IMG/VR virus record: IMGVR_UViG_3300037297_000066
Span: 124,001-188,000 of that record
DNA: 64,000 nt
Direction: 5' to 3' (one strand)
Shown: in pieces, positions 1,413 through 23,259 of the stretch
How positions within the stretch are numbered: position 1 is the first letter of the stretch
Layout: each line of letters opens with the position of its first letter
Program-made: the position numbers and the translations under genes
Notes under the pieces: generated by a model
Seen by the model: only the letters and a program-made list of their open reading frames with translations
The model's database searches: none
Told to the model about the DNA's origin: nothing

Positions 1413-2161
1413 CAATGAGTGAAGCAGTTGACACTTCAGTGACGTCTGAGAATCTGAGTGAACTCTTCGAAGAGCCCTCAATCGAAGACGCTGTTCAAGC
1501 ACGCAGGGGCTGGTACTACTCCCAAAAAGGTTTCGTGGATGAGTGGGATGAGTGGCACTCCAGTGACTACTGGGAGGCCGAACGAGTTCTGTGGGAAACC
1601 CCCTTACGAGGCATTCGTTCAAACCTCCGACAACACTACTACGGACTCCCTTGGTCAGCCCAGCTCAAATACAGGCTTACGATCTACGGTAAACGTGACA
1701 AGAACCGAAGACTTCGTCCTGTGAGGTTCACCCCTGAGCTCCGCTTCGGTCAAACTCGGATCTACCTACCCTCGGTCAACTGTGCCTCTTTGAAGACGGC
1801 GTTTCGAAGAGCCGACGCTCACCCTGAGTTGAAAGCCCGGGTCCGAGAGTTGATGAAAAAGGTCTATAGCAAGAGAGAAGCCGCCTGTGTCTTTCGAAGA
1901 GTGGGTGGGCACAAAGACACCCCCATACGTACAGCTTGGGAACGAGTACTGACAGGACCTCCAGAGTGGTGTCCCTGGGCTACCTTGTTTCACGCCTATG
2001 AAGACTCACTTTCCTGGCCCGAAGGGGAGTACCTAGTGTTTAGGTACAGCCGGGAGGGCCTCGTAAGGTCTTCCTACAAGATCACAGAGCACACCAGCAG
2101 CGGGGGACCTTGTAGGGAACCCGAACCCGATCTAGAGCCTTGGTTCAAATCAGAGGCATGA
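1409..2161 (+). CDS. hypothetical protein (contains RTAWERVL motif)
   Basis: 250 aa ORF, GTGA overlap with the upstream gene. Confidence 0.65.
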   Translation: MTMSEAVDTSVTSENLSELFEEPSIEDAVQARRGWYYSQKGFVDEWDEWHSSDYWEAERVLWETPLRGIRSNLRQHYYGLPWSAQLKYRLTIYGKRDKNRRLRPVRFTPELRFGQTRIYLPSVNCASLKTAFRRADAHPELKARVRELMKKVYSKREAACVFRRVGGHKDTPIRTAWERVLTGPPEWCPWATLFHAYEDSLSWPEGEYLVFRYSREGLVRSSYKITEHTSSGGPCREPEPDLEPWFKSEA

Positions 2162-2202
2162 AAAGGAACCCGTCACCCACTTAACCCATGGGCACAAGAG
2201 TC

Positions 2203-2343
2203 ATGGAAGCTAGCAAAAGCACAGGCACCCTGTTCGGCATCCTGCTCATCATGGCAGGCTACGCCATGGGCTCTTCCCATTGGAAAGTAGCCTTCTTCAT
2301 CCTGGCGGCCTCTTTCCTTATGCGGCAGTGGAAGATGATCTGA
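2203..2343 (+). CDS. small two-helix membrane protein (not in ORF track)
   Basis: MEASKSTGTLFGILLIMAGYAMGSSHWKVAFFILAASFLMRQWKMI*; TGATG overlap with the next gene. Confidence 0.5.
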   Translation: MEASKSTGTLFGILLIMAGYAMGSSHWKVAFFILAASFLMRQWKMI

Positions 2344-2816
2344 TGCCCACACCCGTGCAAGTTGGGCAACCCTTGCTGAAGAGCTACCTTGACGTAGACT
2401 TCTCCAATTTGCTAGACACCCAAGGAGAAAAGCCTTTCAAGCGGATCCCTGAGAGTCGAGGCACATTGTTGTTCATAGACCTGTTGCCTAACGTACCCTG
2501 GCCGCATCCTTGTCTTTGGGTTGTCATGGGCCACGAGGAAGGGTCTAAAGTAGGGTTTCGGCCTTGGAAATGGCCCCCTTGCCTAGAAGTTGAGATCGAA
2601 AAAGAAGACGACACACATCTACAAGAGGGGCTTGATGGTTTGGATATGGATCCGTGGCCTAGGCAACGTCGCCAATCCAAGAAGCGCCCCAAAGAGTTGC
2701 CTTTCGAAGAGTATCCCTTGACAGGCACACACTGTAGTGCTTGCGGAGAACCCCAACGCATGACTGATGGGGGGTTTTCTTGCAAGAACGGACATGGAGG
2801 AGCGCCCCCCAAATGA
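2343..2816 (+). CDS. hypothetical protein, C-terminal Zn ribbon
   Basis: CSACG...CKNGH at the C-terminus; start re-called by TGATG overlap. Confidence 0.6.
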   Translation: MPTPVQVGQPLLKSYLDVDFSNLLDTQGEKPFKRIPESRGTLLFIDLLPNVPWPHPCLWVVMGHEEGSKVGFRPWKWPPCLEVEIEKEDDTHLQEGLDGLDMDPWPRQRRQSKKRPKELPFEEYPLTGTHCSACGEPQRMTDGGFSCKNGHGGAPPK

Positions 2817-3073
2817 GTATCAAACAGACCTACTACTGTGACAACCCTGAGTGCAACCACAGCACTCAAGACCTGGACCCCTCGATACTAAACCACCAAG
2901 TAGTACGAAAGGGTTGGTCAGAAGTCACGGTCGTGAACCACAACGATCATGGCATCCGACGAACCTACCATTTCTGTTCTTCCTCTTGCATGATCAGGGG
3001 ACTACAGAAACACTTCGAAAAGGTCATCCAAGAAGAGGAGCTGGAAGCGCAAGAGCCTGCTCCCGTTCCCTAA
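2813..3073 (+). CDS. hypothetical Zn-finger protein
   Basis: YYCDNPEC...HFCSSSC; ATGA overlap. Confidence 0.6.
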   Translation: MSIKQTYYCDNPECNHSTQDLDPSILNHQVVRKGWSEVTVVNHNDHGIRRTYHFCSSSCMIRGLQKHFEKVIQEEELEAQEPAPVP

Positions 3074-3077
3074 AACC

Positions 3078-3434
3078 ATGGACAACCGCCTAGTCAAGGT
3101 TGTCATCCAAAGGGCTCTAACCCTAATGGAGGAAGAGGATCGTCCCCTCATTGAGGAGATCCAACGCTACCTGACAAGGGGTAATCTCCCCCATAGTTGC
3201 CAAAGCCGCTCCGAGTGGGGAGCGAGACTGAGTTTCAGGCTAGGGGGCCGGTTTGACTTCGATAAAGTCCAGGAAAGTCTGGACAACAGTTTGCTTCTCT
3301 TGGCGGCTATCAACGTCTGCCAAGAAGAGGAGGGGGTTCCGTTCCCCTCTCCTACCTCCCGAGCAGATGCCCACAGAAGGCTTCGAGAATGTTTCCCCAC
3401 CATGTGGGACCATCTCCTTCAAGATCCGGTGTAA
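3078..3434 (+). CDS. hypothetical protein with C-terminal PTMWDHLL motif
   Basis: 118 aa ORF, co-oriented. Confidence 0.65.
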   Translation: MDNRLVKVVIQRALTLMEEEDRPLIEEIQRYLTRGNLPHSCQSRSEWGARLSFRLGGRFDFDKVQESLDNSLLLLAAINVCQEEEGVPFPSPTSRADAHRRLRECFPTMWDHLLQDPV

Positions 3435-3443
3435 AGTACCCGT

Positions 3444-5180
3444 ATGGCGCATCGTGCAATCACTATCGACGACCGACGGACCCGGGATATGGACGATGCC
3501 ATTTGGGTCGAACAAAACCCTGATGGCTGGGAGCTCTTAGTCCACATCGCCAACGTGTCCAGGCTAGTCGAGAAGGACAGCCCCTTCGACACTACAGCTC
3601 AAAAGCGGGTAGCCACCCAGTATTACAGGGACGGCAATCGCCCCATGCTTCCCCGGAGCCTGAGTGAGGGAGAGGCTTCTCTCAAGCCTCAGGAGAGTCG
3701 AAGCGTCCTGACGATCAGGGCTTTTCTGGACACTTCCCTGGAGCTCCAGGAGACCAGTATCAGTACAGGCAGTGTCGTCAGCGTGGCCAAATTGTCCTAC
3801 GACGAGATCCCCGACCTGGTGAAGAAAGGATCCTTCTGCCTGCAAGCTGCTAGGACTCTAGCCTTCGGGCTTTTGGCCAAACGCCGAGACCAAGGAGCCC
3901 TCGTCCACTACGACCTGAACAACGGATGGTTGACCACTGAAGAAGGGCATCTCAAAAGGATCGAACGCAAGGAAGATGTGGTGGGTCACATCATCATCCA
4001 GGAGCTGATGGTGTTAGCCAACAGCCTCGTGGCTCAAGAAGCAGTGAAGAACGACATCCCCATCCTGTTCCGAAACCATCAAGCCAAAGCGGCGGCCCCC
4101 GACCGACGGGATCTCATGGATCAGATCAACGCAGCCATGATCTCCCCCCTCACCGAGCTGGAACGAATTCGGTTGCAGGTGCACATGTTGCTCGAACGAG
4201 CTCAGTACGATGTGGTTCTCCGGGGGCACTATGGACTCAACCTTCCGGCCTACACCCATTTCACGAGTCCCATCCGCCGATTCGCTGATCTGGCCAACCA
4301 TCGCCAAATCAGGGCACACCTCACAGGAGCCTCCCTCCCCTACACTCGGGAAGAGCTGGAGGCCATAGGAGCCCACATCAACCAGGTAGACGAACAACTC
4401 CGAGAGAAGGTCTCCGAGAAGGCCAAGGCAGGAGCCAACGAGAGAGCCCAACGACGTCTCGAAAGAGGCACCTTGCGCACTCTAGGAGCTAAGGGATTCG
4501 AACGAGTGGTCAAGGTGGCCCTTCGAAGTGGAGAGGACCTCCCAGAGGAACTGGACGCAGAGTATCGAGAGAGGATTCGAGAAGGGGATGTCCCCCTCAT
4601 CTGCAAGACCGTCCTGGTCGTGAGTCACCTGAAACACCCCAAATGGCAGGCTCTACGACGCCACATGGTCGAAAGACTGTCTATACAGGATGCAGTCAGC
4701 CTCCTGGCTCAAGCTTCCCAAATCCAACCAGACTGGGGGGAAGTGGAGTATCGGGAAGGCGCATCAGTGTCCGAGGGGGTGTTCTCAGTAGTTGCAGGTC
4801 TAGGAGCTTACGATGGGTGGGGATACCACCAGACCAAAAAGGGGGCTCAACAACGAGCAGCCTACAAGCTCATAGCGTCCCTCTGCGGCTTCCAGGTGGC
4901 TTACGACAATACCGAAGCTCCCCTGGCACCCCCAGAAGCCAAAGACCCTCAGAAGCCGGCTGTGGGGGTCCAGAACCCTGTCTCAGCCCTACAGGAATTC
5001 TACCAACAGGCCGGCCGACCTTTACCCCAATACACGTTCCAACGAAATGGCCCCGATCACGTGCCTACCATCACCTGCCAGTGCACGTTCGGAGGACAAT
5101 CCGTAGAGGTACAGGGCAGATCGAAGAAGGCCGCTAAAGCAGCTGCGGCGGCCAAAGCCATCAAGCTCCTTCATGTCTGA
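3444..5180 (+). CDS. RNB (RNase II/R-family) exoribonuclease fused to two C-terminal dsRNA-binding domains
   Basis: TIDD..TRDMDDA catalytic motif, VHIANVS, YTHFTSPIRRFADL..HRQ; dsRBD motifs TKKGAQQRAA and NPVSALQE..Q...P.Y....GPDH.P....GRSKKAAKAAAA. Confidence 0.92.
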   Translation: MAHRAITIDDRRTRDMDDAIWVEQNPDGWELLVHIANVSRLVEKDSPFDTTAQKRVATQYYRDGNRPMLPRSLSEGEASLKPQESRSVLTIRAFLDTSLELQETSISTGSVVSVAKLSYDEIPDLVKKGSFCLQAARTLAFGLLAKRRDQGALVHYDLNNGWLTTEEGHLKRIERKEDVVGHIIIQELMVLANSLVAQEAVKNDIPILFRNHQAKAAAPDRRDLMDQINAAMISPLTELERIRLQVHMLLERAQYDVVLRGHYGLNLPAYTHFTSPIRRFADLANHRQIRAHLTGASLPYTREELEAIGAHINQVDEQLREKVSEKAKAGANERAQRRLERGTLRTLGAKGFERVVKVALRSGEDLPEELDAEYRERIREGDVPLICKTVLVVSHLKHPKWQALRRHMVERLSIQDAVSLLAQASQIQPDWGEVEYREGASVSEGVFSVVAGLGAYDGWGYHQTKKGAQQRAAYKLIASLCGFQVAYDNTEAPLAPPEAKDPQKPAVGVQNPVSALQEFYQQAGRPLPQYTFQRNGPDHVPTITCQCTFGGQSVEVQGRSKKAAKAAAAAKAIKLLHV

Positions 5181-5592
5181 CTCCGACGATCTGCAGGAGT
5201 ACTGGCAAGACCTCAACCCGGGGCCTTCCAAACCTCCTCCCCGCAAGTGCTGCATTTGTGGCCTAACCGAACCGAGCTACGCAAGGATCCGAGAACGGCA
5301 AGGAGACAAGGGGAGCTACCCTGAAGACGGGTTCATCCTCATCCAAGCCCACACCGGACTAGACACCACGTGGGACCAGCTGGTCTGCATCTGGTGTCAC
5401 TCATATCTGTACGGCTACTTCCGGGACAAGCTGATAACCGAGGTGGAAGAGAAGGTTCGCAACCGGATCTGTGCAGAGATGTCCAACGAGATCTCAGAGC
5501 TGTTCAAGAAGTACAGAACGGACATTACGGCAGATGTCACTACTATCTTCAACGGGGTCAAGGTGCCGAAAGGTAAAACTCCGCCGTTCTGA
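5173..5592 (+). CDS. hypothetical protein with CxxC...CxxC
   Basis: CCICG...CIWC; overlaps the upstream stop. Confidence 0.6.
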   Translation: MSDSDDLQEYWQDLNPGPSKPPPRKCCICGLTEPSYARIRERQGDKGSYPEDGFILIQAHTGLDTTWDQLVCIWCHSYLYGYFRDKLITEVEEKVRNRICAEMSNEISELFKKYRTDITADVTTIFNGVKVPKGKTPPF

Positions 5593-5616
5593 CAGTCGAA
5601 CGGTGTACAGTGGAGT

Positions 5617-5847
5617 GTGGAACCCCTGCCTGAAAGACTGCTGGCTATCTCCATCCGTATCGTGAGAGCCAGAGCGGCCTACCAGAGAAGCCAAGAGAAG
5701 CGCTTTGCAAGGGATTACCAGACAGCCCTCAGAGAGTTCCGCCAGTTGGTACCTTCTGTCAGTGCCCACGATGCGACTCGACTAGCCGCCGTTCTCGTAG
5801 ACTTGGCAGGGACCAAGCTTCGACAAGAACTAGGGTTGATGGGGTAA
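5617..5847 (+). CDS. hypothetical protein, similar to N-terminus of 8263..8997
   Basis: VRA...R.....PS.S..DA..LA shared; GGTGTACAGT 5 nt upstream. Confidence 0.6.
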   Translation: MEPLPERLLAISIRIVRARAAYQRSQEKRFARDYQTALREFRQLVPSVSAHDATRLAAVLVDLAGTKLRQELGLMG

Positions 5848-6787: not shown

Positions 6788-6814
6788 ACTGTACACCAAC
6801 TCTCGGTGTATGGT
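6788..6814. promoter_or_regulatory. back-to-back divergent GGTGTAnnGT promoter motifs
   Basis: GGTGTACAGT on minus (6788-6797) and GGTGTATGGT on plus (6805-6814) between divergent genes; representative of about 21 copies. Confidence 0.7.
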
Positions 6815-8997: not shown

Positions 8998-9088
8998 AAT
9001 AACCTCCCTTTGACGCAGCCACTCGGTGTACAGTCCTCTCACGCATTGATCCGAGCAACCCTCGGGTAACGAACGAAAGGGACCCACC

Positions 9089-10042
9089 ATGGGAACGTCG
9101 AGATGGAGTGATGACTTTTACAGTGCGAGAGAAGCCGAACGGGCCAAGACTGGAACGAGCGCCTTCCACTACACTGAGGCGATCAACAAGGGAGAGGAGA
9201 TTCGTCAGGTACACGCAACGATGAACCCCCAGGGAGTGACCCGGGAAAGCCGAGACAGTGACGAGCACCCGGACAGCAACTCGGTGGCCGTCATTTTCGA
9301 CGTGACCGGCTCGATGCACACGGTTCCTGTACTCCTACAGAAGAAGCTTCCCAAACTCATGGGGACTCTGGGGCGCAAGAACTATCTCCCCCATCCCCAG
9401 GTGCTGTTCGGAGCAGTAGGAGACTACTACAACGACAAGGGTCCGGTCCAAATCGGCCAGTACGAATCCGGCATCGAGATGGATGATGACCTGGGACGGT
9501 TCTGGCTCGAAGGGGGAGGGGGCGGCACTGGAGAAGAATCCTACGAACTGGCTCTGTATTTCTTTGCCCGACACACGAGCATCGACTGCTTCGAGAAGCG
9601 GGGAAGAAAAGGCTACTTGTTCATCGTCGGTGACGAGAAGCCCTACCCTCGGGTGGATCGTCAGGCCGTCAAGAGGATCTTCGGAGACGACATCCAGGAA
9701 GACATCCCCATCGAACAGATCATTGCCGAATGCAGGGAGAAGTACCACGTGTTCTTCCTCCTCCCCAAGGGCACTTCGCACTGGAACAGCACGCCGACCC
9801 ACGCCCGATGGATCCAACTCTTGGGCGAGGACTACTTCCGGCTCTTGGAAGATCCCGACACTGTCTGCGAGACCATTTCGGTGATCATCGGCATGACCGA
9901 GGGTACTGTGAACCTCGACCAGGCCAAGGAACATCTCCGAGAAGCGGGAACGTCCGAAGCAGCGTTGAACCACGTCACCAACGCCGTCCAGTCTCTGGCT
10001 CGCCAAGGAAAGGCTCCCTCGGAGGGGAACGTTCGCCTCTGA
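9089..10042 (+). CDS. von Willebrand factor A (vWA) domain protein
   Basis: MIDAS-like FDVTGSM, AVGD, EGGGGG..EESY, YLFIVGDE. Confidence 0.85.
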   Translation: MGTSRWSDDFYSAREAERAKTGTSAFHYTEAINKGEEIRQVHATMNPQGVTRESRDSDEHPDSNSVAVIFDVTGSMHTVPVLLQKKLPKLMGTLGRKNYLPHPQVLFGAVGDYYNDKGPVQIGQYESGIEMDDDLGRFWLEGGGGGTGEESYELALYFFARHTSIDCFEKRGRKGYLFIVGDEKPYPRVDRQAVKRIFGDDIQEDIPIEQIIAECREKYHVFFLLPKGTSHWNSTPTHARWIQLLGEDYFRLLEDPDTVCETISVIIGMTEGTVNLDQAKEHLREAGTSEAALNHVTNAVQSLARQGKAPSEGNVRL

Positions 10043-11391
10043 TGCCAGTCGTAGTCACAGGACTCGGCTTTGGTGACGAAGGCAAGGGTTCCATCGTTGA
10101 CTTTTTGGCCAGGGGATGTGACTCCTTTTCTCTGGTCGTCAGGTATAGCGGTGGAGCCCAAGCTGCCCATACCGTAGTGTGCCCCGACGGGAGAGAGCAC
10201 ACCTTCTCCCAGTTCGGCTCAGGAACATTCGTCCCAGGATCAAAAACGTTCCTGAGCCGACACATGCTGGTCAACCCAGTCGCCCTCTTGAGCGAGGAGC
10301 AACACCTTCAATCTGTGGGTGTGACTGATGCATTTGACCGTCTCTACATCGATGCCGGAGCCCTGGTCACCAATCCGTTCCAGGTCTCAGCCAATCGCCT
10401 TCGGGAGCTAGCCAGAGACAAGAAGCGTCACGGGTCCTGTGGGATGGGCATCGGGGAGACCAAGCAAGACCATTCCGACCATCCCGAAACCACCATCATC
10501 GTTGACACCCTCAAGGATCCTGGTCTGGTCCGAGCTAAGTTAGAGCTGAGCCGACAACTCAAGCTAGACGAATTCGAGAAAGTCGTATGGGACCTGCCTC
10601 GAACTGAAGCCGTGGCCCGAGAGTGGCACCTGTTGCGGGACAAAGGGTCCGTGGATGCTTGCGTAAAGCGATTCCAAGAGGTCTACTCACGAGCTCAAAT
10701 TGTAGGAGACCCCTTTCTCCCGGAGCACCTCCGTCGAAAAGACCACTTCATCATCTTCGAGGGATCTCAAGGGGTTCTCCTGGATCATGCCTACGGACTC
10801 TTTCCTCATGTCACACGGGGAGACACCACCCTGAAGAATGCTCTAGATCTACTGAACGGAACCGAGCCCTTCACGATAGGAGTCCTCCGAGCGTACTCTA
10901 CCCGCCACGGGGCCGGACCTTTTCCGACCGAGGACACCACCTGGAACCTGCCAGAACCCCACAACAGAACCAATGCTTGGCAACAGGGGTTCAGGGCAGG
11001 GCCCCTAGACATCCTCCTGGCTCGCTACGCCATCCAAGCCATTGGAGGGGTAGACGCCATAGCCCTCAACCATCTAGACCATCTAGGGCCGTCTGGGGCC
11101 CCTTACAGGCTATGCCGGGAATACGACTCTCCTGTCCTCCACACCAGATTCAGTCCTACCCATGGGCCAATAACTCAACTGCTCCCAAGGTTCTCCTATG
11201 ACCTGGAAGCCAGAAAACGGTTCACCTCGGCCGTAGAACAAGTGCGACCCCTCTACACCTCTTTCTCAAACGAGGATAGTTTTAAAGCCCAGATCCGGGA
11301 AGACTTGGGGCACTCAGCTATCCTCGAAGGAAGAGGCCCAACAGCCAACGACAAAAAGTTCAAAATCAACCGGCTAAAGAACCATGCCTGA
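10042..11391 (+). CDS. purA: adenylosuccinate synthetase-like (PurA-family) protein, divergent
   Basis: GLGFGDEGKG P-loop, RYSGGAQAAHT, GSCGMGIG, FEGSQG.LLD, TRHGAGPFPTE; start re-called to TGATG overlap at 10042. Confidence 0.85.
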   Translation: MPVVVTGLGFGDEGKGSIVDFLARGCDSFSLVVRYSGGAQAAHTVVCPDGREHTFSQFGSGTFVPGSKTFLSRHMLVNPVALLSEEQHLQSVGVTDAFDRLYIDAGALVTNPFQVSANRLRELARDKKRHGSCGMGIGETKQDHSDHPETTIIVDTLKDPGLVRAKLELSRQLKLDEFEKVVWDLPRTEAVAREWHLLRDKGSVDACVKRFQEVYSRAQIVGDPFLPEHLRRKDHFIIFEGSQGVLLDHAYGLFPHVTRGDTTLKNALDLLNGTEPFTIGVLRAYSTRHGAGPFPTEDTTWNLPEPHNRTNAWQQGFRAGPLDILLARYAIQAIGGVDAIALNHLDHLGPSGAPYRLCREYDSPVLHTRFSPTHGPITQLLPRFSYDLEARKRFTSAVEQVRPLYTSFSNEDSFKAQIREDLGHSAILEGRGPTANDKKFKINRLKNHA

Positions 11392-12265
11392 AAGTACCCT
11401 CCTAGAAGCTATTCGCTCCGAAGCCGAGACCGTCCCTTTGACCAGGGGAGACTTCTGCGACCTGTCTCTCATCACCTATACGCAAGAGGCCGGGAAGGAA
11501 AGCCGACCCACGGTTTGGGATCGTCTTCTGGATGAGGGGGAAGAGGTGACGGCCGTCCTCAAGATGACCAGAAGGGCTGTTGACAACGACCTCCTAGACA
11601 ACGAGCTGCGCATTCTCAACCATTTGTTTCCCCCAGACGCCAAAGAAGAAAAGTTCCTGCGTTACCTACCCCACCTGCTGGCAGCCTTCACTGAAGGCGG
11701 CCACCGAGTCAACGCCTTAACCTATGCCGAGGGGTACGTGTCTCTCGAAGACATCCTCAAGAGCTATCCCAACGGAATCGATTACAGAGACTTCGCTTGG
11801 ATGTTCCGGCGCCTCTTGGAGGGGCTCTTCTACGTCCACCGACACGGAGTAGTGCACGGAGCTCTGGTGCCTTCCCACGTTCTGATTCATCCCACAGAAC
11901 ACGGGGCCAAGATCATCGACTGGTCCTACGCTGTACGGGAAAATGAAGTCGTCAAGGCCATCGTGGCTCAGTACCGGGCCTACTACCCCATGGAGATCCT
12001 TACCAAGGCATCCCCTCGTCCCTGCTCCGATCTCTACATGGCAGCCAAGTGTGGGGTCGCCCTTATGGGAGGGAACCCCAAAACGAACGAGATGCCAGAC
12101 AAGGTACCCCCGGAGATCCAAGCCTTCTTTCAAGGATGTCTTCAGAAGACTCCCTCAATGAGGCCCTCGGATGCCAGTGAGCTCTACGATGAGTACTCTG
12201 AGGTTCTGAGGAAGCTCCTCGGGAAACCCAAGTACCGCCCCTTCAAGATGCCGCCCCTAAACTGA
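11384..12265 (+). CDS. Ser/Thr protein kinase-like protein lacking the catalytic Asp (probable pseudokinase)
   Basis: VLK..., NE..IL, Y.H..GVVHGALVPSHVLI, IIDWSYA, Y.P.E, SDLY; HRD replaced by HGA, DFG by DWS. Confidence 0.8.
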   Translation: MPESTLLEAIRSEAETVPLTRGDFCDLSLITYTQEAGKESRPTVWDRLLDEGEEVTAVLKMTRRAVDNDLLDNELRILNHLFPPDAKEEKFLRYLPHLLAAFTEGGHRVNALTYAEGYVSLEDILKSYPNGIDYRDFAWMFRRLLEGLFYVHRHGVVHGALVPSHVLIHPTEHGAKIIDWSYAVRENEVVKAIVAQYRAYYPMEILTKASPRPCSDLYMAAKCGVALMGGNPKTNEMPDKVPPEIQAFFQGCLQKTPSMRPSDASELYDEYSEVLRKLLGKPKYRPFKMPPLN

Positions 12266-21585: not shown

Positions 21586-21869
21586 GATCTGTCTCCAAAA
21601 ATGGCTTCCCTGACTTGGTCGAGAGCTTCAGCATCGGTTCGGCCTTCACCCTTGACGCATCGTGAACCTCTCGTGAACATCCAGAATGTGTGGAACACCC
21701 CGTTCAATCGGTAGTCGTTGTGGACGGCCACCATCCACCCTTCTTGCCGGATGTCATCGGGAGAAGCGGCCCTAGTAGTGATGCTTCTAGCCGCTCGATC
21801 GAACTCGTCTGACTCAGCCCTAGTGTCAGGCTGGTAGTGGGCCTCTGATCTTAGCCGAGGCATAGTCAC
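21582..21869 (-). CDS. hypothetical protein
   Basis: GWMVAVHNDY..NG..HTFW.F; coupled. Confidence 0.65.
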   Translation of the reverse strand: MTMPRLRSEAHYQPDTRAESDEFDRAARSITTRAASPDDIRQEGWMVAVHNDYRLNGVFHTFWMFTRGSRCVKGEGRTDAEALDQVREAIFGDRS

Positions 21870-22114
21870 TCTTCAATGAGCTCGGCTGCTTTCAACAGCA
21901 AGCCAGACAACGCCTGGGCCTCGGACTTCGTGAGCCTTCCCAACGAACTGGTTTTTTCCACCCCTTTGTTTGTCACCCAGTGCCTGTTGCAAGCTACCTT
22001 GGGAGGCCCGTTGTTGTAGCTACAGATGCGCACTCTCACGGATTTGGCCGGGGGTTTCTCGAAAGCCCCCACCTCGTGAAGCACCTTGTCATCTTCAGGT
22101 TTGAACTCTGGCAT
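21866..22114 (-). CDS. small protein, possibly PC4-like ssDNA-binding fold
   Basis: VRVRICSYNNGPPKV...R......LGRLT..E pattern. Confidence 0.4.
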   Translation of the reverse strand: MPEFKPEDDKVLHEVGAFEKPPAKSVRVRICSYNNGPPKVACNRHWVTNKGVEKTSSLGRLTKSEAQALSGLLLKAAELIEE

Positions 22115-22118
22115 CGGT

Positions 22119-22442
22119 TTACCAAATCACATCCCACTGAACCTCAGCGGAATACGCCTTAACAGCCTCTTCCAAACAAGCCTTCAGAAACGAAGAATCC
22201 AAGGCAGCCTCTAGCTTGTGAAGCACGCCCTCCTCTCGCATCCCTGGCTCAAGGAGGTTTCGGATTATAGAGGATAGTTGAGCTGTGTCTAGACAAGAAA
22301 TGTCGTATGCCTCCATCTCCTGCTCAAACAGCTCAGCAAAGCTCTGATGGATCAGACACTCCGACATACCGCCTTTCTCAAAGAACAGCCCTTCGTACAA
22401 CTTGGGTGCCAAAGCAAACCCCAAATGCAACATGAGACTCAT
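22119..22442 (-). CDS. hypothetical protein
   Basis: Coupled ORF. Confidence 0.55.
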   Translation of the reverse strand: MSLMLHLGFALAPKLYEGLFFEKGGMSECLIHQSFAELFEQEMEAYDISCLDTAQLSSIIRNLLEPGMREEGVLHKLEAALDSSFLKACLEEAVKAYSAEVQWDVIW

Positions 22443-22954
22443 GCGGCCACCGTTCCCAAGTCAGACTGTAGGAGCTCTCTGAATCTAGGCCAGACTCTCT
22501 GGCAGAAGAGCATGAGCTGGGTGGGTACGTCGTAGACAGCCCACTCCCAAGCTTCTTCCAGTCGAGTCTCCTCAAGCCAATTACCGAAGTCTTCGGATCG
22601 CCTGAGGTTGTTGAACTCTCGGGGCAGGTCCCATTCACACCGGGCTTGATCCTTCTCCAGGTAACCCTCTCTCCGCAACCGACAGATCTCTTCCCGAATG
22701 TTACTCAGGGTTCGATCTGCCTGGTACTCTCGGGCTCCCCCAGCGAGTTTGCCTGAAAGGTAGCAGGTGTCGAGCTCTAGCAAGAACTCTCGGAACCCCC
22801 CTTTCCCCCAGCCCTGAGAGGGCCAGTGGTAGACATAGTTGCCAAAGTCGCTTGCAATGGCCAGCATGCCGTTGCTATCGAGCAAGAAGACACCCCATCC
22901 TTCGCCAGGCTTGTCGTTCCTCAAGGCGTATCGCCAGACCTGTACTTCGCTCAC
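22439..22954 (-). CDS. phage-type hypothetical protein
   Basis: SDFGNYVYHW...FL...D..YL..KL. Confidence 0.7.
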   Translation of the reverse strand: MSEVQVWRYALRNDKPGEGWGVFLLDSNGMLAIASDFGNYVYHWPSQGWGKGGFREFLLELDTCYLSGKLAGGAREYQADRTLSNIREEICRLRREGYLEKDQARCEWDLPREFNNLRRSEDFGNWLEETRLEEAWEWAVYDVPTQLMLFCQRVWPRFRELLQSDLGTVAA

Positions 22955-23259
22955 GTCTCCTCCTCGTACCCATATCGTAGTCGGAGATCTCCCAACATCC
23001 CTCGGGCGAAACCGATAGCTTCTTCACAAGAGCTCCTCTTCGCCATATCAACCACTTGAGACAACCTGTCGTGAATAGCCTCGACAGCTACTGCTGGAAG
23101 GTCTGCTTCTCCGATGACACCGGCTTCAATGGCTTTGTCACGAAGGGCTTTTCGAGCATCCTCCATCTCATCCATGAGCCATTCTAGGTCATTCTTGGAA
23201 ATGTCCCCTCCCCTGATGACGGCTCCAAGGTCCAGCAAGAGTCGGTGTGGATTTTTCAC
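22951..23259 (-). CDS. hypothetical protein
   Basis: Start re-called to GTG 23259. Confidence 0.55.
   Translation of the reverse strand: MKNPHRLLLDLGAVIRGGDISKNDLEWLMDEMEDARKALRDKAIEAGVIGEADLPAVAVEAIHDRLSQVVDMAKRSSCEEAIGFARGMLGDLRLRYGYEEET

Follow-up and report, generated by a model that had tools for sequence, protein, structure and literature searches.

A giant-phage cassette of a predicted vWA protein, a divergent PurA-like protein and a predicted pseudokinase, shared with hundreds of bacterial species

A 437-kb phage genome carries a three-gene cassette that also occurs in hundreds of bacterial species and in several other large phages, and that is built around a divergent relative of the AMP-synthesis enzyme PurA encoded next to a predicted vWA protein. 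Across its family, this PurA-like protein (PurA-L) keeps the catalytic residues and is inferred to keep the GTP site, whereas all residues aligned with the aspartate contacts of PurA and three of the four IMP 5'-phosphate contacts are replaced or deleted. It is therefore very unlikely to be an adenylosuccinate synthetase or a PurZ, and the most likely, though tentative, reading is a GTP-dependent ligase for a non-aspartate amine, probably forming some other modified purine nucleotide. The cassette appears to be undescribed: literature searches combining PurA-like proteins with kinases, vWA proteins, pseudokinases, J domains, NrtR or defence found nothing on it, and an eLife 2020 paper on conflict systems mentions neither adenylosuccinate nor this architecture.

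The three genes lie on the plus strand of the analysed window, a 64,000-nucleotide stretch of IMG/VR record IMGVR_UViG_3300037297_000066, and are translationally coupled. The vWA gene occupies 9089-10042, and its stop overlaps the start of the PurA-like gene as TGATG at 10040-10044. The PurA-like gene occupies 10042-11391, starting at the ATG at 10042 (MPVVVTGLGFGDEGKG) and encoding 449 aa, so that the mechanically called ORF 9730-11391 is over-extended. Its stop overlaps the kinase start as ATGCCTGA at 11384-11391, the kinase gene extends over 11384-12265, and a convergent gene starts 7 nt after the kinase stop, so the operon holds exactly three genes. A GGTGTACAGT motif is located at 9025-9034 (+), 55 nt upstream of the vWA start codon. 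With up to 1 mismatch, it occurs 15 times in the window against 2.9 expected, a number reached by none of 100 shuffles, and GGTGTAN[AG]GT occurs 85 times in the 437-kb genome, oriented with the genes and often about 7 nt before a start codon. It is therefore a recurrent promoter-like element of this phage, although its function as a promoter is inferred. The observation in the initial annotation, of three overlapping genes behind this motif with altered PurA and kinase signatures, is confirmed, and every motif it named is present in the translations: GDEGKG, AAHT, GSCGMGIG, EPHNRTNAWQQGFR and HLD in the PurA-like protein, and HGA and DWS in the kinase.

The first gene encodes a 317-aa protein without a Pfam hit that matches phrog_2971 at 3e-69 and has more than 7300 homologues. 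Its AF2 model (pLDDT 87.2, pTM 0.88) adopts a Rossmann-like vWA fold, with Foldseek matches to integrin beta I domains and the NorD vWA domain (E 5e-7) and a VIA-align Z of 15.4 to integrin beta I domains (rmsd 2.8 over 172 residues). The protein has a family-specific N-terminal extension (residues 1-59, with invariant Met1-Gly2...Trp6), a G142-G146 loop and a C-terminal ...NVRL, and all 83 proteins compared start with Met-Gly. Of the MIDAS pattern DxSxS...T...D, D71-V-T73-G-S75 and G181-D182-E183 are invariant, the middle Thr not being assignable without model coordinates. Some cluster C phages carry an intein-like insert 4 residues before the GDE motif. An association between a C-terminal -RL and the presence of the kinase appeared strong by Fisher's test (p = 9e-7) but is not significant once phylogeny is taken into account (6 independent pairs, p about 0.25). 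An ESM Atlas feature search with the vWA protein returned only unnamed clusters. A 1498-aa ORF containing the vWA region in a Gemmataceae locus has no Pfam domain and was taken to be an over-extended ORF rather than a fusion.

The PurA-like protein matches Pfam PF00709 at 1e-56 (192.9 bits against a cut-off of 27) over profile positions 1-342 of 416, but scores far below every NCBIfam purA equivalog cut-off (NF002223, 152.3 bits against 402; TIGR00184, 142.4 against 395.6) and below the cut-off of the PurZ model NF038379 (34.5 against 300). PurA-L forms a clade separate from cellular PurA (SH-aLRT 100), although the placement of the Rhizobium and Vibrio phage enzymes next to the window sequence may be a long-branch artefact. 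In addition, 5 of 5 host genomes hold a canonical PurA (566-616 bits) as well as PurA-L (188-221 bits). Alignment to E. coli PurA structures places GFGDEGKGS and GGAQAAHT on residues 12-17 and 36-42, and these segments are conserved in 67-68 of 68 family members. In E. coli numbering, D13, K16, H41, Q224, T239, D333 and S414/G416/P417 are kept across the family, whereas N38Q, T128S, T129C, R131M/L, R143 to mostly D/E, V273H, T300W, T301Q, deletion of R303, R305F and K331H/C are changed. In E. coli PurA, L-aspartate is bound by Thr300, Thr301, Arg303 and Arg305 (the GATTGRRRR loop) and Val273; the window residues at these positions are W, Q, a deletion, F and H, with family counts of W 67/68, Q 67/68, gap 69/70, F 63 and H 67. 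The IMP 5'-phosphate is held by Asn38, Thr129, Thr239 and Arg143 of the partner subunit, of which only Thr239 is kept, the window having N38Q, T129C and R143E (D/E in 46 of 68 members). Of the guanine-recognition residues Lys331-x-Asp333 and Ser414-x-Gly-Pro, Asp333 is kept in 68 of 68 and G416/P417 are kept, while Lys331 becomes His or Cys and position 414 is Gly in the window and Ser in most members.

The third gene encodes a 293-aa protein matching Pkinase at 3e-10 and phrog_3043 at 7e-39, and its AF2 model (pLDDT 92) matches the protein kinase fold at a Foldseek TM of about 0.7 (FGFR2, PIM1 and PAK). The beta3 Lys (K60), the alphaC Glu (E74), H158-G-A160, H165 and H173 are conserved in 36 of 36 sequences, and the DFG-position Asp (D179) in 31 of 36. 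The catalytic loop reads H158-G-A...H165 in place of HRDxxxxN, without the Asp base and the Mg-binding Asn, and by this criterion the protein is a pseudokinase or an enzyme with different chemistry. An HPD motif (YRxLAxxxHPD), with weak, sub-threshold Pfam DnaJ hits, is present in 64 of 70 homologues, indicating a J-domain-like N-terminus that is absent from the window protein.

The cassette is not phage-specific but mainly a bacterial chromosomal one, with the vWA gene occurring in at least 595 bacterial species across five or more phyla. In 80 genome loci found through the vWA gene, PurA-L lies immediately downstream in about 70 and the kinase immediately upstream in about 65, and an NrtR-like Nudix/winged-helix regulator gene lies directly upstream on the same strand in 56 of 83 loci and also in one megaphage-like contig. 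Clustering of all ORFs of at least 110 aa in the 80 loci gave no further family conserved across taxa apart from the trio, the NrtR-like gene having been found by a separate search. A NudC-like Nudix is fused or adjacent to PurA-L in Kitasatospora and Streptomyces. In 121 Micromonosporaceae genomes, vWA is present in 45 and PurA-L in 44; all 44 fall within the 45 and are adjacent, the one exception sits at a contig end, and 76 genomes have neither. The pair is also present in about 200 cluster C mycobacteriophages, in Rhizobium and Vibrio phages and in other megaphages. Among GenBank phages, the PurA-L and vWA hits fall in the same groups with the same counts (Mycobacterium 201; Rhizobium 10; Vibrio 6), whereas the kinase is found only in the mycobacteriophage group, and the genes flanking the vWA/PurA-L pair in the Rhizobium and Vibrio phages are not detectable kinase homologues. 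Related megaphage contigs keep the gene order of the window, and compared with the bacterial cassette this phage carries a reordered copy without the J domain. A DNA search of the locus against GenBank phages gave no match, and a single-sequence pattern scan of IMG/VR found only one relative. In the phage genome itself, no NrtR homologue, NadV or Hsp70 was found, while one distant Nudix ORF and two J-domain ORFs far from the cassette were detected.

Taken together, these data show the composition of the cassette: an obligatory core of a vWA-fold protein with a predicted MIDAS and a divergent, apparently neofunctionalised PurA family member, a frequent third member with a protein kinase fold that is dispensable in several lineages, and a frequent fourth member of the NrtR family. 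The chemistry, by contrast, is inferred only from residue conservation mapped onto E. coli PurA by alignment, and the roles of the partners are inferred on weaker grounds still, without any observed substrate, product or interaction; the model as a whole is accordingly held with less than even confidence. In this view, PurA-L would bind GTP and use the PurA catalytic pair (Asp13 as base and His41 as acid), with Lys16 and Gln224, to phosphorylate the oxo group of a purine-like acceptor, but would neither bind L-aspartate nor hold a free 5'-monophosphate as PurA does. It would therefore join the activated acceptor to some other amine, yielding an N6-substituted adenine-type nucleotide or conjugate rather than adenylosuccinate. 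The vWA protein would be its obligate partner, either as a scaffold or activator latching on through its putative MIDAS metal or as the acceptor itself. The pseudokinase, which keeps its nucleotide-pocket residues, would act as a nucleotide-binding adaptor that in bacteria recruits Hsp70 (DnaK) through the J domain, and the NrtR-type regulator and occasional NudC-like neighbours would tie expression or turnover to a ribose-nucleotide ligand such as ADP-ribose, although the NrtR family also includes sugar-sensing regulators, so this link is only a lead. The phage would express its own promoter-driven copy to run the same chemistry in the infected cell, but because the window copy lacks the J domain and the phage lacks an NrtR homologue, parts of the bacterial model may not apply to it. 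The interpretation in the initial annotation, a nucleotide-modifying or signalling module in which a PurA-fold ligase uses a non-canonical substrate, possibly in phage-host conflict, is partly supported. The enzyme is very unlikely to be a plain adenylosuccinate synthetase, the substitutions seen in one sequence are invariant signatures of a whole family, and the three-gene linkage, whose absence had been named in advance as a ground for refutation, proved strongly conserved; that the product is a signal or modified nucleotide, or that the module acts in phage-host conflict, is not shown.

Among alternative explanations, an ordinary auxiliary metabolic gene, with PurA-L as a working adenylosuccinate synthetase boosting AMP supply during infection beside unrelated neighbours, would fit the PF00709 match, the retained GDEGKG, His41, Gln224 and Asp333, and GenBank records naming the mycobacteriophage homologues 'PurA-like adenylosuccinate synthetase', yet it is very unlikely given the family-wide loss of the aspartate and most 5'-phosphate contacts, the sub-cut-off equivalog scores, the separate canonical PurA of the hosts and the strict co-occurrence and adjacency with the vWA gene. 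A PurZ-type enzyme making 2-aminoadenine (Z) nucleotides for a modified phage genome appears even less likely: although it belongs to the same superfamily, and PHROG 1211 and RefSeq label the relatives '2-aminooxy adenylosuccinate synthetase', Asp13 is kept, whereas all 147 phage PurZ sequences studied in PMC12884076 have Ser at that position, no PurZ structure appeared among the PDB sequence hits at E<=0.001, PurZ also uses aspartate, the site for which is replaced here, and the family is mostly found in bacterial chromosomes. The loss of the aspartate contacts would also fit ammonia as the nucleophile, converting IMP or ITP directly to AMP or ATP, for example to repair a deaminated adenine-nucleotide pool, or a pure GTP-dependent kinase that stops at the phosphorylated intermediate, with the vWA protein as activator, as for enzymes served by MoxR ATPases. 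This possibility, unlikely but not negligible, is consistent with intact phosphotransfer machinery beside an amino-acid pocket filled with Trp, Phe, His and Gln, with the common role of vWA proteins as adaptors for maturation or reactivation of a neighbouring enzyme (the NorQD work, PMC13036017) and with the Foldseek match to NorD; however, it lacks direct evidence, no MoxR-type AAA+ gene occurs in the conserved neighbourhood, and neither the invariant vWA N-terminus nor the altered 5'-phosphate site is explained.

With regard to biological role, a phage-host conflict module, acting as an immune or abortive system in bacteria and carried by phages for counter-defence or superinfection exclusion, is possible but unlikely. 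Such a role might be suggested by the patchy distribution (45 of 121 Micromonosporaceae species), the presence in at least four unrelated groups of large phages, nearby Nudix, NADAR and NrtR-type genes, and the resemblance of the kinase domain to the kinase portions of MkoA, mad6, PD-T4-6 and PglW in PADLOC-DB v2, where the vWA and PurA-L proteins have no hit. Nevertheless, vWA proteins are 50-58% identical across phyla, the PurA-L tree largely follows taxonomy, the locus is syntenic in 14 Micromonospora genomes and each genome has a single copy, which are features of a conserved physiological function rather than a fast-evolving defence island. A more speculative reading, which seems remote, is that PurA-L does to a protein what PurA does to aspartate, activating a purine nucleotide with GTP and joining its C6 to the free alpha-amine of the invariant N-terminal glycine of the vWA partner, whose tip is disordered in the model. 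The resulting N6-linked adenine nucleotide could then be read by the nucleotide pocket of the dead kinase and removed by Nudix enzymes, which would be a new kind of post-translational nucleotide tagging shared by bacteria and large phages. A structure prediction of PurA-L in complex with the vWA protein scored 0.11 against a mark of 0.32, which is not evidence either way.

PurA-family enzymes were long thought to do one job, until PurZ showed that a small change in the family underlies a whole alternative DNA chemistry. PurA-L represents a second, much larger offshoot, inferred to have lost aspartate binding while keeping the GTP-driven chemistry, and its carriers include about 200 sequenced mycobacteriophages that can be handled in the laboratory. 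Identification of its product would define a new nucleotide-modifying reaction, and possibly a new signal or protein tag, and would give a function to genes now annotated 'hypothetical protein', 'PurA-like' and 'serine/threonine kinase', a question that the cluster C mycobacteriophage/M. smegmatis system and culturable actinomycetes make directly testable.

In comparison with known systems, the cassette shares with NrtR-regulated NAD/ADP-ribose operons the upstream regulator found in most bacterial loci, but contains none of the usual NAD biosynthesis or salvage genes. As in the vWA adaptor systems NorD-NorQ, CbbO-CbbQ, CoxE-CoxD and BchD-BchI and the TerY vWA-kinase-phosphatase triad, a cytoplasmic, predicted MIDAS-type vWA protein is encoded next to an enzyme and, often, a protein-kinase-fold gene; however, neither a MoxR AAA+ ATPase nor a PP2C phosphatase is found among the conserved neighbours, the vWA protein has a distinctive N-terminal extension, and the predicted dead kinase usually carries a J domain, which suggests Hsp70 rather than an AAA+ motor. 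PurZ/PurZ0 of Z-genome phages is likewise a phage-borne, neofunctionalised PurA family member, but one that replaces Asp13 by Ser and still uses aspartate, whereas PurA-L keeps Asp13 and has lost the aspartate site. With adenylosuccinate synthetase PurA itself (EC 6.3.4.4; E. coli structures 1ADE and 1CG0), PurA-L shares the superfamily and fold, the P-loop, His41, Gln224 and Asp333, so that GTP-driven activation of an oxo-purine is probably shared, while its aspartate site and most of its IMP 5'-phosphate site carry other family-wide residues, and it is a second paralogue, linked to a vWA gene, beside the housekeeping PurA.

The 64-kb window corresponds to bases 124001-188000 of a 437,331-bp IMG/VR virus record with direct terminal repeats, that is, a megaphage, and its G+C content is about 55% throughout. 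Three plus-strand ORFs are present at 9089-10042, 9730-11391 and 11384-12265, although the middle ORF is over-extended, as the PurA-like sequence begins at ATG 10042 (MPVVVTGLGFGDEGKG), sharing one base with the upstream stop (cgcctcTGATGcca). The third gene starts 8 nt before the PurA-like stop (ATGCCTGA), and a convergent ORF begins 7 nt after the third gene, so that the unit consists of exactly three tightly coupled genes. The sequence GGTGTACAGT lies at 9025-9034 and, with one mismatch allowed, occurs 15 times in the window against 2.9 expected, a count that was not reached in any of 100 shuffles. The related pattern GGTGTAN[AG]GT occurs 85 times in the whole genome (for example, at window positions 5602-5611, 6788-6797 and 9025-9034), oriented with the genes and often about 7 nt before an ATG or GTG start codon, with several copies forming divergent pairs. 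It is interpreted as the common promoter-like element of this phage, suggesting a phage-wide promoter with many leaderless or near-leaderless transcripts. Upstream of the cassette, it leaves a leader of about 50 nt with a GAAAGGGA ribosome-binding site. Another copy (3428-3437) lies directly in front of a gene at 3444-5180 (+) encoding a 578-aa protein with an RNB exoribonuclease domain (E 2e-67) and a C-terminal double-stranded-RNA-binding motif (E 1e-16). All protein motifs listed in the initial annotation are found in the translations, and its observation of three overlapping genes behind the 9025-9034 motif is confirmed. In addition, 28 paralogous ORFs of about 160-270 aa lie head to tail on the minus strand at 30261-63599, often with overlapping stops and starts. 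They form a single blastp family (E<1e-5, single linkage), and the four that were examined have no Pfam domain, representing a very large tandem gene-family expansion in a megaphage.

The first gene has no Pfam, NCBIfam or PADLOC match but matches phrog_2971, a family of unknown function, at E 3e-69. An AlphaFold2 model built from 41 homologues is confident (pLDDT 87, pTM 0.88) and corresponds to a vWA domain, with Foldseek matches to integrin I domains and the NorD vWA domain and a VIA-align Z of 15.4 over residues 60-307. Residues 1-59 form a family-specific extension, and the invariant columns include Met1-Gly2, Trp6, an RESRD motif, D71-x-T-G-S75 (MIDAS-like), G142-G146 and G181-D-E183. 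All 83 proteins compared begin with Met-Gly, and the first five residues are disordered in the model. The C-terminus ends in -Arg-Leu in 64 of 70 loci with a kinase and in 2 of 11 without (Fisher p = 9e-7). However, only six phylogenetically independent contrasts exist and the test on these is not significant, so that this association remains only a lead. In some cluster C mycobacteriophages, the vWA gene carries an in-frame, intein-like insert of about 254 aa, as in Mycobacterium phage CharlieB gp252 (locus L105, positions 1501-3282; annotated 'HNH endonuclease'). The insert begins with Cys, ends ...SSN followed by Cys, and sits four residues before the invariant GDE motif of the vWA domain.

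The linkage between these genes is conserved, and mostly outside phages. Among the 8,000 candidates scored, the vWA protein has more than 7,300 homologues at E<=0.001, of which the best 120 are all at least 52% identical and derive from Myxococcota, Planctomycetota and many metagenomes. A pattern scan of one genome per GTDB species identified at least 595 species, including Planctomycetota, Chloroflexota, many Actinomycetota, Myxococcota and Terriglobales. In 80 of these loci, tblastn places a PurA-like gene immediately downstream in about 70 and a kinase-like gene immediately upstream in about 65, giving the usual order kinase, vWA, PurA-like, which is also seen in precomputed gene calls for Labilithrix luteola and a planctomycete. 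In 121 sampled Micromonosporaceae genomes, the vWA gene is present in 45 and the PurA-like gene in 44, each in a single copy. All 44 fall within the 45 and the two genes are adjacent, the one exception having its vWA gene at a contig end, while the other 76 genomes have neither gene. Several lineages lack the kinase, including some Chloroflexota and Planctomycetota, a 336-455 kb megaphage, and the Rhizobium and Vibrio phages, and the invariant core is therefore vWA plus PurA-like.

Among phages, about 200 cluster C mycobacteriophages carry kinase, vWA, an 88-aa gene and PurA-like in that order, and the three proteins are 36-38% identical to those of the window. Ten Rhizobium and six Vibrio phage records carry vWA followed by PurA-like. 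These distant pairs without a kinase, such as those of Rhizobium phage RHph_TM39 (locus L103, positions 3501-5775) and Vibrio phage SRILMA (locus L104, positions 3501-5583), occur in phages of about 190-207 kb that infect Proteobacteria, and the Rhizobium phage has an NMN adenylyltransferase/Nudix gene 2.7 kb upstream. The PurA-like and vWA tblastn hit lists fall in the same three phage groups with the same counts. Two metagenomic contigs, one of 80.8 kb and one from a set reaching 432 kb, share the window's own order of vWA, PurA-like and a short kinase.

The second gene product matches the Pfam family Adenylsucc_synt at 1e-56, but only over profile positions 1-342 of 416, and lies far below every NCBIfam purA equivalog cut-off (152 bits against 402) as well as the PurZ cut-off (34.5 against 300). 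It is an extra, diverged paralogue, as five of five bacterial genomes with the cassette also have a canonical PurA scoring 566-616 bits on PF00709, while their PurA-like proteins score 188-221 bits. In a maximum-likelihood tree, cellular PurAs and PurA-like proteins are separated by a long branch with SH-aLRT 100, and within the PurA-like clade the bacterial sequences largely follow taxonomy, although the position of the long-branched phage sequences is unreliable. When 70 family members were mapped onto enterobacterial PurA numbering, Gly12-Asp13-x-Gly-Lys16-Gly, His41, Gln224, Thr239, Asp333 and Ser414/Gly416/Pro417 were found to be kept, comprising the GTP site, the guanine-specifying Asp, and the base/acid pair that makes 6-phosphoryl-IMP in E. 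coli PurA, although position 414 is Ser in most members but Gly in the window protein. In contrast, other nearly invariant residues replace Asn38 (Gln), Thr128 (Ser), Thr129 (Cys), Arg131 (Met/Leu), Arg143 (mostly Asp/Glu), Val273 (His), Thr300 (Trp), Thr301 (Gln), Arg305 (Phe) and Lys331 (His/Cys), and Arg303 is deleted. Every side chain that holds aspartate in the E. coli PurA structures is therefore gone, and three of the four that hold the IMP 5'-phosphate are changed. The distant Rhizobium and Vibrio phage versions share His273, Gln301, the deletion and a hydrophobic residue at 305, whereas the window protein and its two closest relatives differ from the bulk at positions 238 and 240 (Val and Arg/His instead of Thr and Trp). 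The simplest reading, based on residue conservation, is an enzyme that still activates an oxo-purine-type acceptor with GTP but couples it to a different nucleophile, on an acceptor whose 5' end is bound differently.

The third gene product matches Pkinase at 3e-10, and its model folds confidently (pLDDT 92) into a full eukaryotic-type protein kinase fold, with TM about 0.7 to FGFR2, PIM1 and PAK. Across 36 homologues, the beta3 Lys (K60) and alphaC Glu (E74) are invariant and the DFG Asp (D179) is present in 31, but the catalytic loop reads H158-G-A160...H165 in all 36, where active kinases have HRD...N, and a further His173 is also invariant. It is a pseudokinase by the usual criterion, although a different chemistry built on the invariant histidines is not excluded. 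In 64 of 70 homologues the N-terminus carries YRxLAxxxHPD, with weak but recurrent Pfam DnaJ hits, whereas the window protein and its close relatives lack this segment. Two J-domain (HPD) ORFs lie elsewhere in the phage genome outside the window (genome positions 21763-22962 and 267893-268321), and no Hsp70 gene was found in this phage.

In 56 of 83 bacterial loci (for example, L036:4271-5020, L010:1280-1966 and L107:6008-6736, given as locus and position), a gene with NUDIX and NrtR winged-helix domains lies directly upstream of the cassette on the same strand, and two of five that were checked keep a full Nudix box. One megaphage-like contig has the same arrangement, with NADAR and Nudix genes nearby. 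In Kitasatospora and some Streptomyces, a zinc-ribbon Nudix domain of NudC type is fused to or lies immediately after the PurA-like gene, as in Kitasatospora sp. KL5 (L021:8478-8990) and in loci L026, L056, L029, L042 and L074. The phage of the window, however, has no NrtR homologue and no NadV, and one Nudix ORF is found elsewhere in its genome. No other gene family is conserved across taxa around the cassette, and in particular neither a MoxR AAA+ ATPase nor a PP2C phosphatase was found.

The anatomy of the cassette, the conserved pairing, the paralogy with PurA, the family-wide active-site changes, the dead catalytic loop of the kinase and the recurrent Nudix regulator are directly supported by these data, whereas the mechanism is inferred from them. 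It is tentatively proposed that PurA-like is a GTP-dependent ligase for a non-aspartate amine, or possibly ammonia, or a kinase that stops at the phosphorylated intermediate. In this view, the vWA protein would be its obligate partner, serving as a MIDAS-based scaffold or activator or as the acceptor itself, the pseudokinase would be a nucleotide-binding adaptor that brings in Hsp70 in bacteria, and the Nudix proteins would sense or remove a ribose-nucleotide ligand. Structure prediction of a PurA-like/vWA complex gave no verdict and does not contribute to this proposal. The interpretation given in the initial annotation is partly supported: its central inference, that the module does not carry out plain AMP synthesis, is well supported by comparative evidence, whereas its suggested role in phage-host conflict is possible but unproven. 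The strong sequence conservation, synteny and single-copy state argue instead for a conserved physiological reaction that phages borrow.

With respect to known systems, the enzyme belongs to the PurA superfamily but fails the defining substrate-site and equivalog tests for PurA, as well as the Ser13 and profile tests for PurZ, and it differs from both in its new, apparently obligate partners, with a wide distribution in bacteria and large phages. A 2026 survey of 481 viral PF00709 proteins treated the non-PurZ members simply as PurA homologues used to root the tree (PMC12884076), and literature searches found no description of the cassette, which also matches no PADLOC system. The cassette resembles vWA adaptor systems and the vWA-kinase-phosphatase triad in having a cytoplasmic MIDAS protein, here predicted, next to an enzyme and a kinase-fold protein, but it lacks their ATPase or phosphatase.
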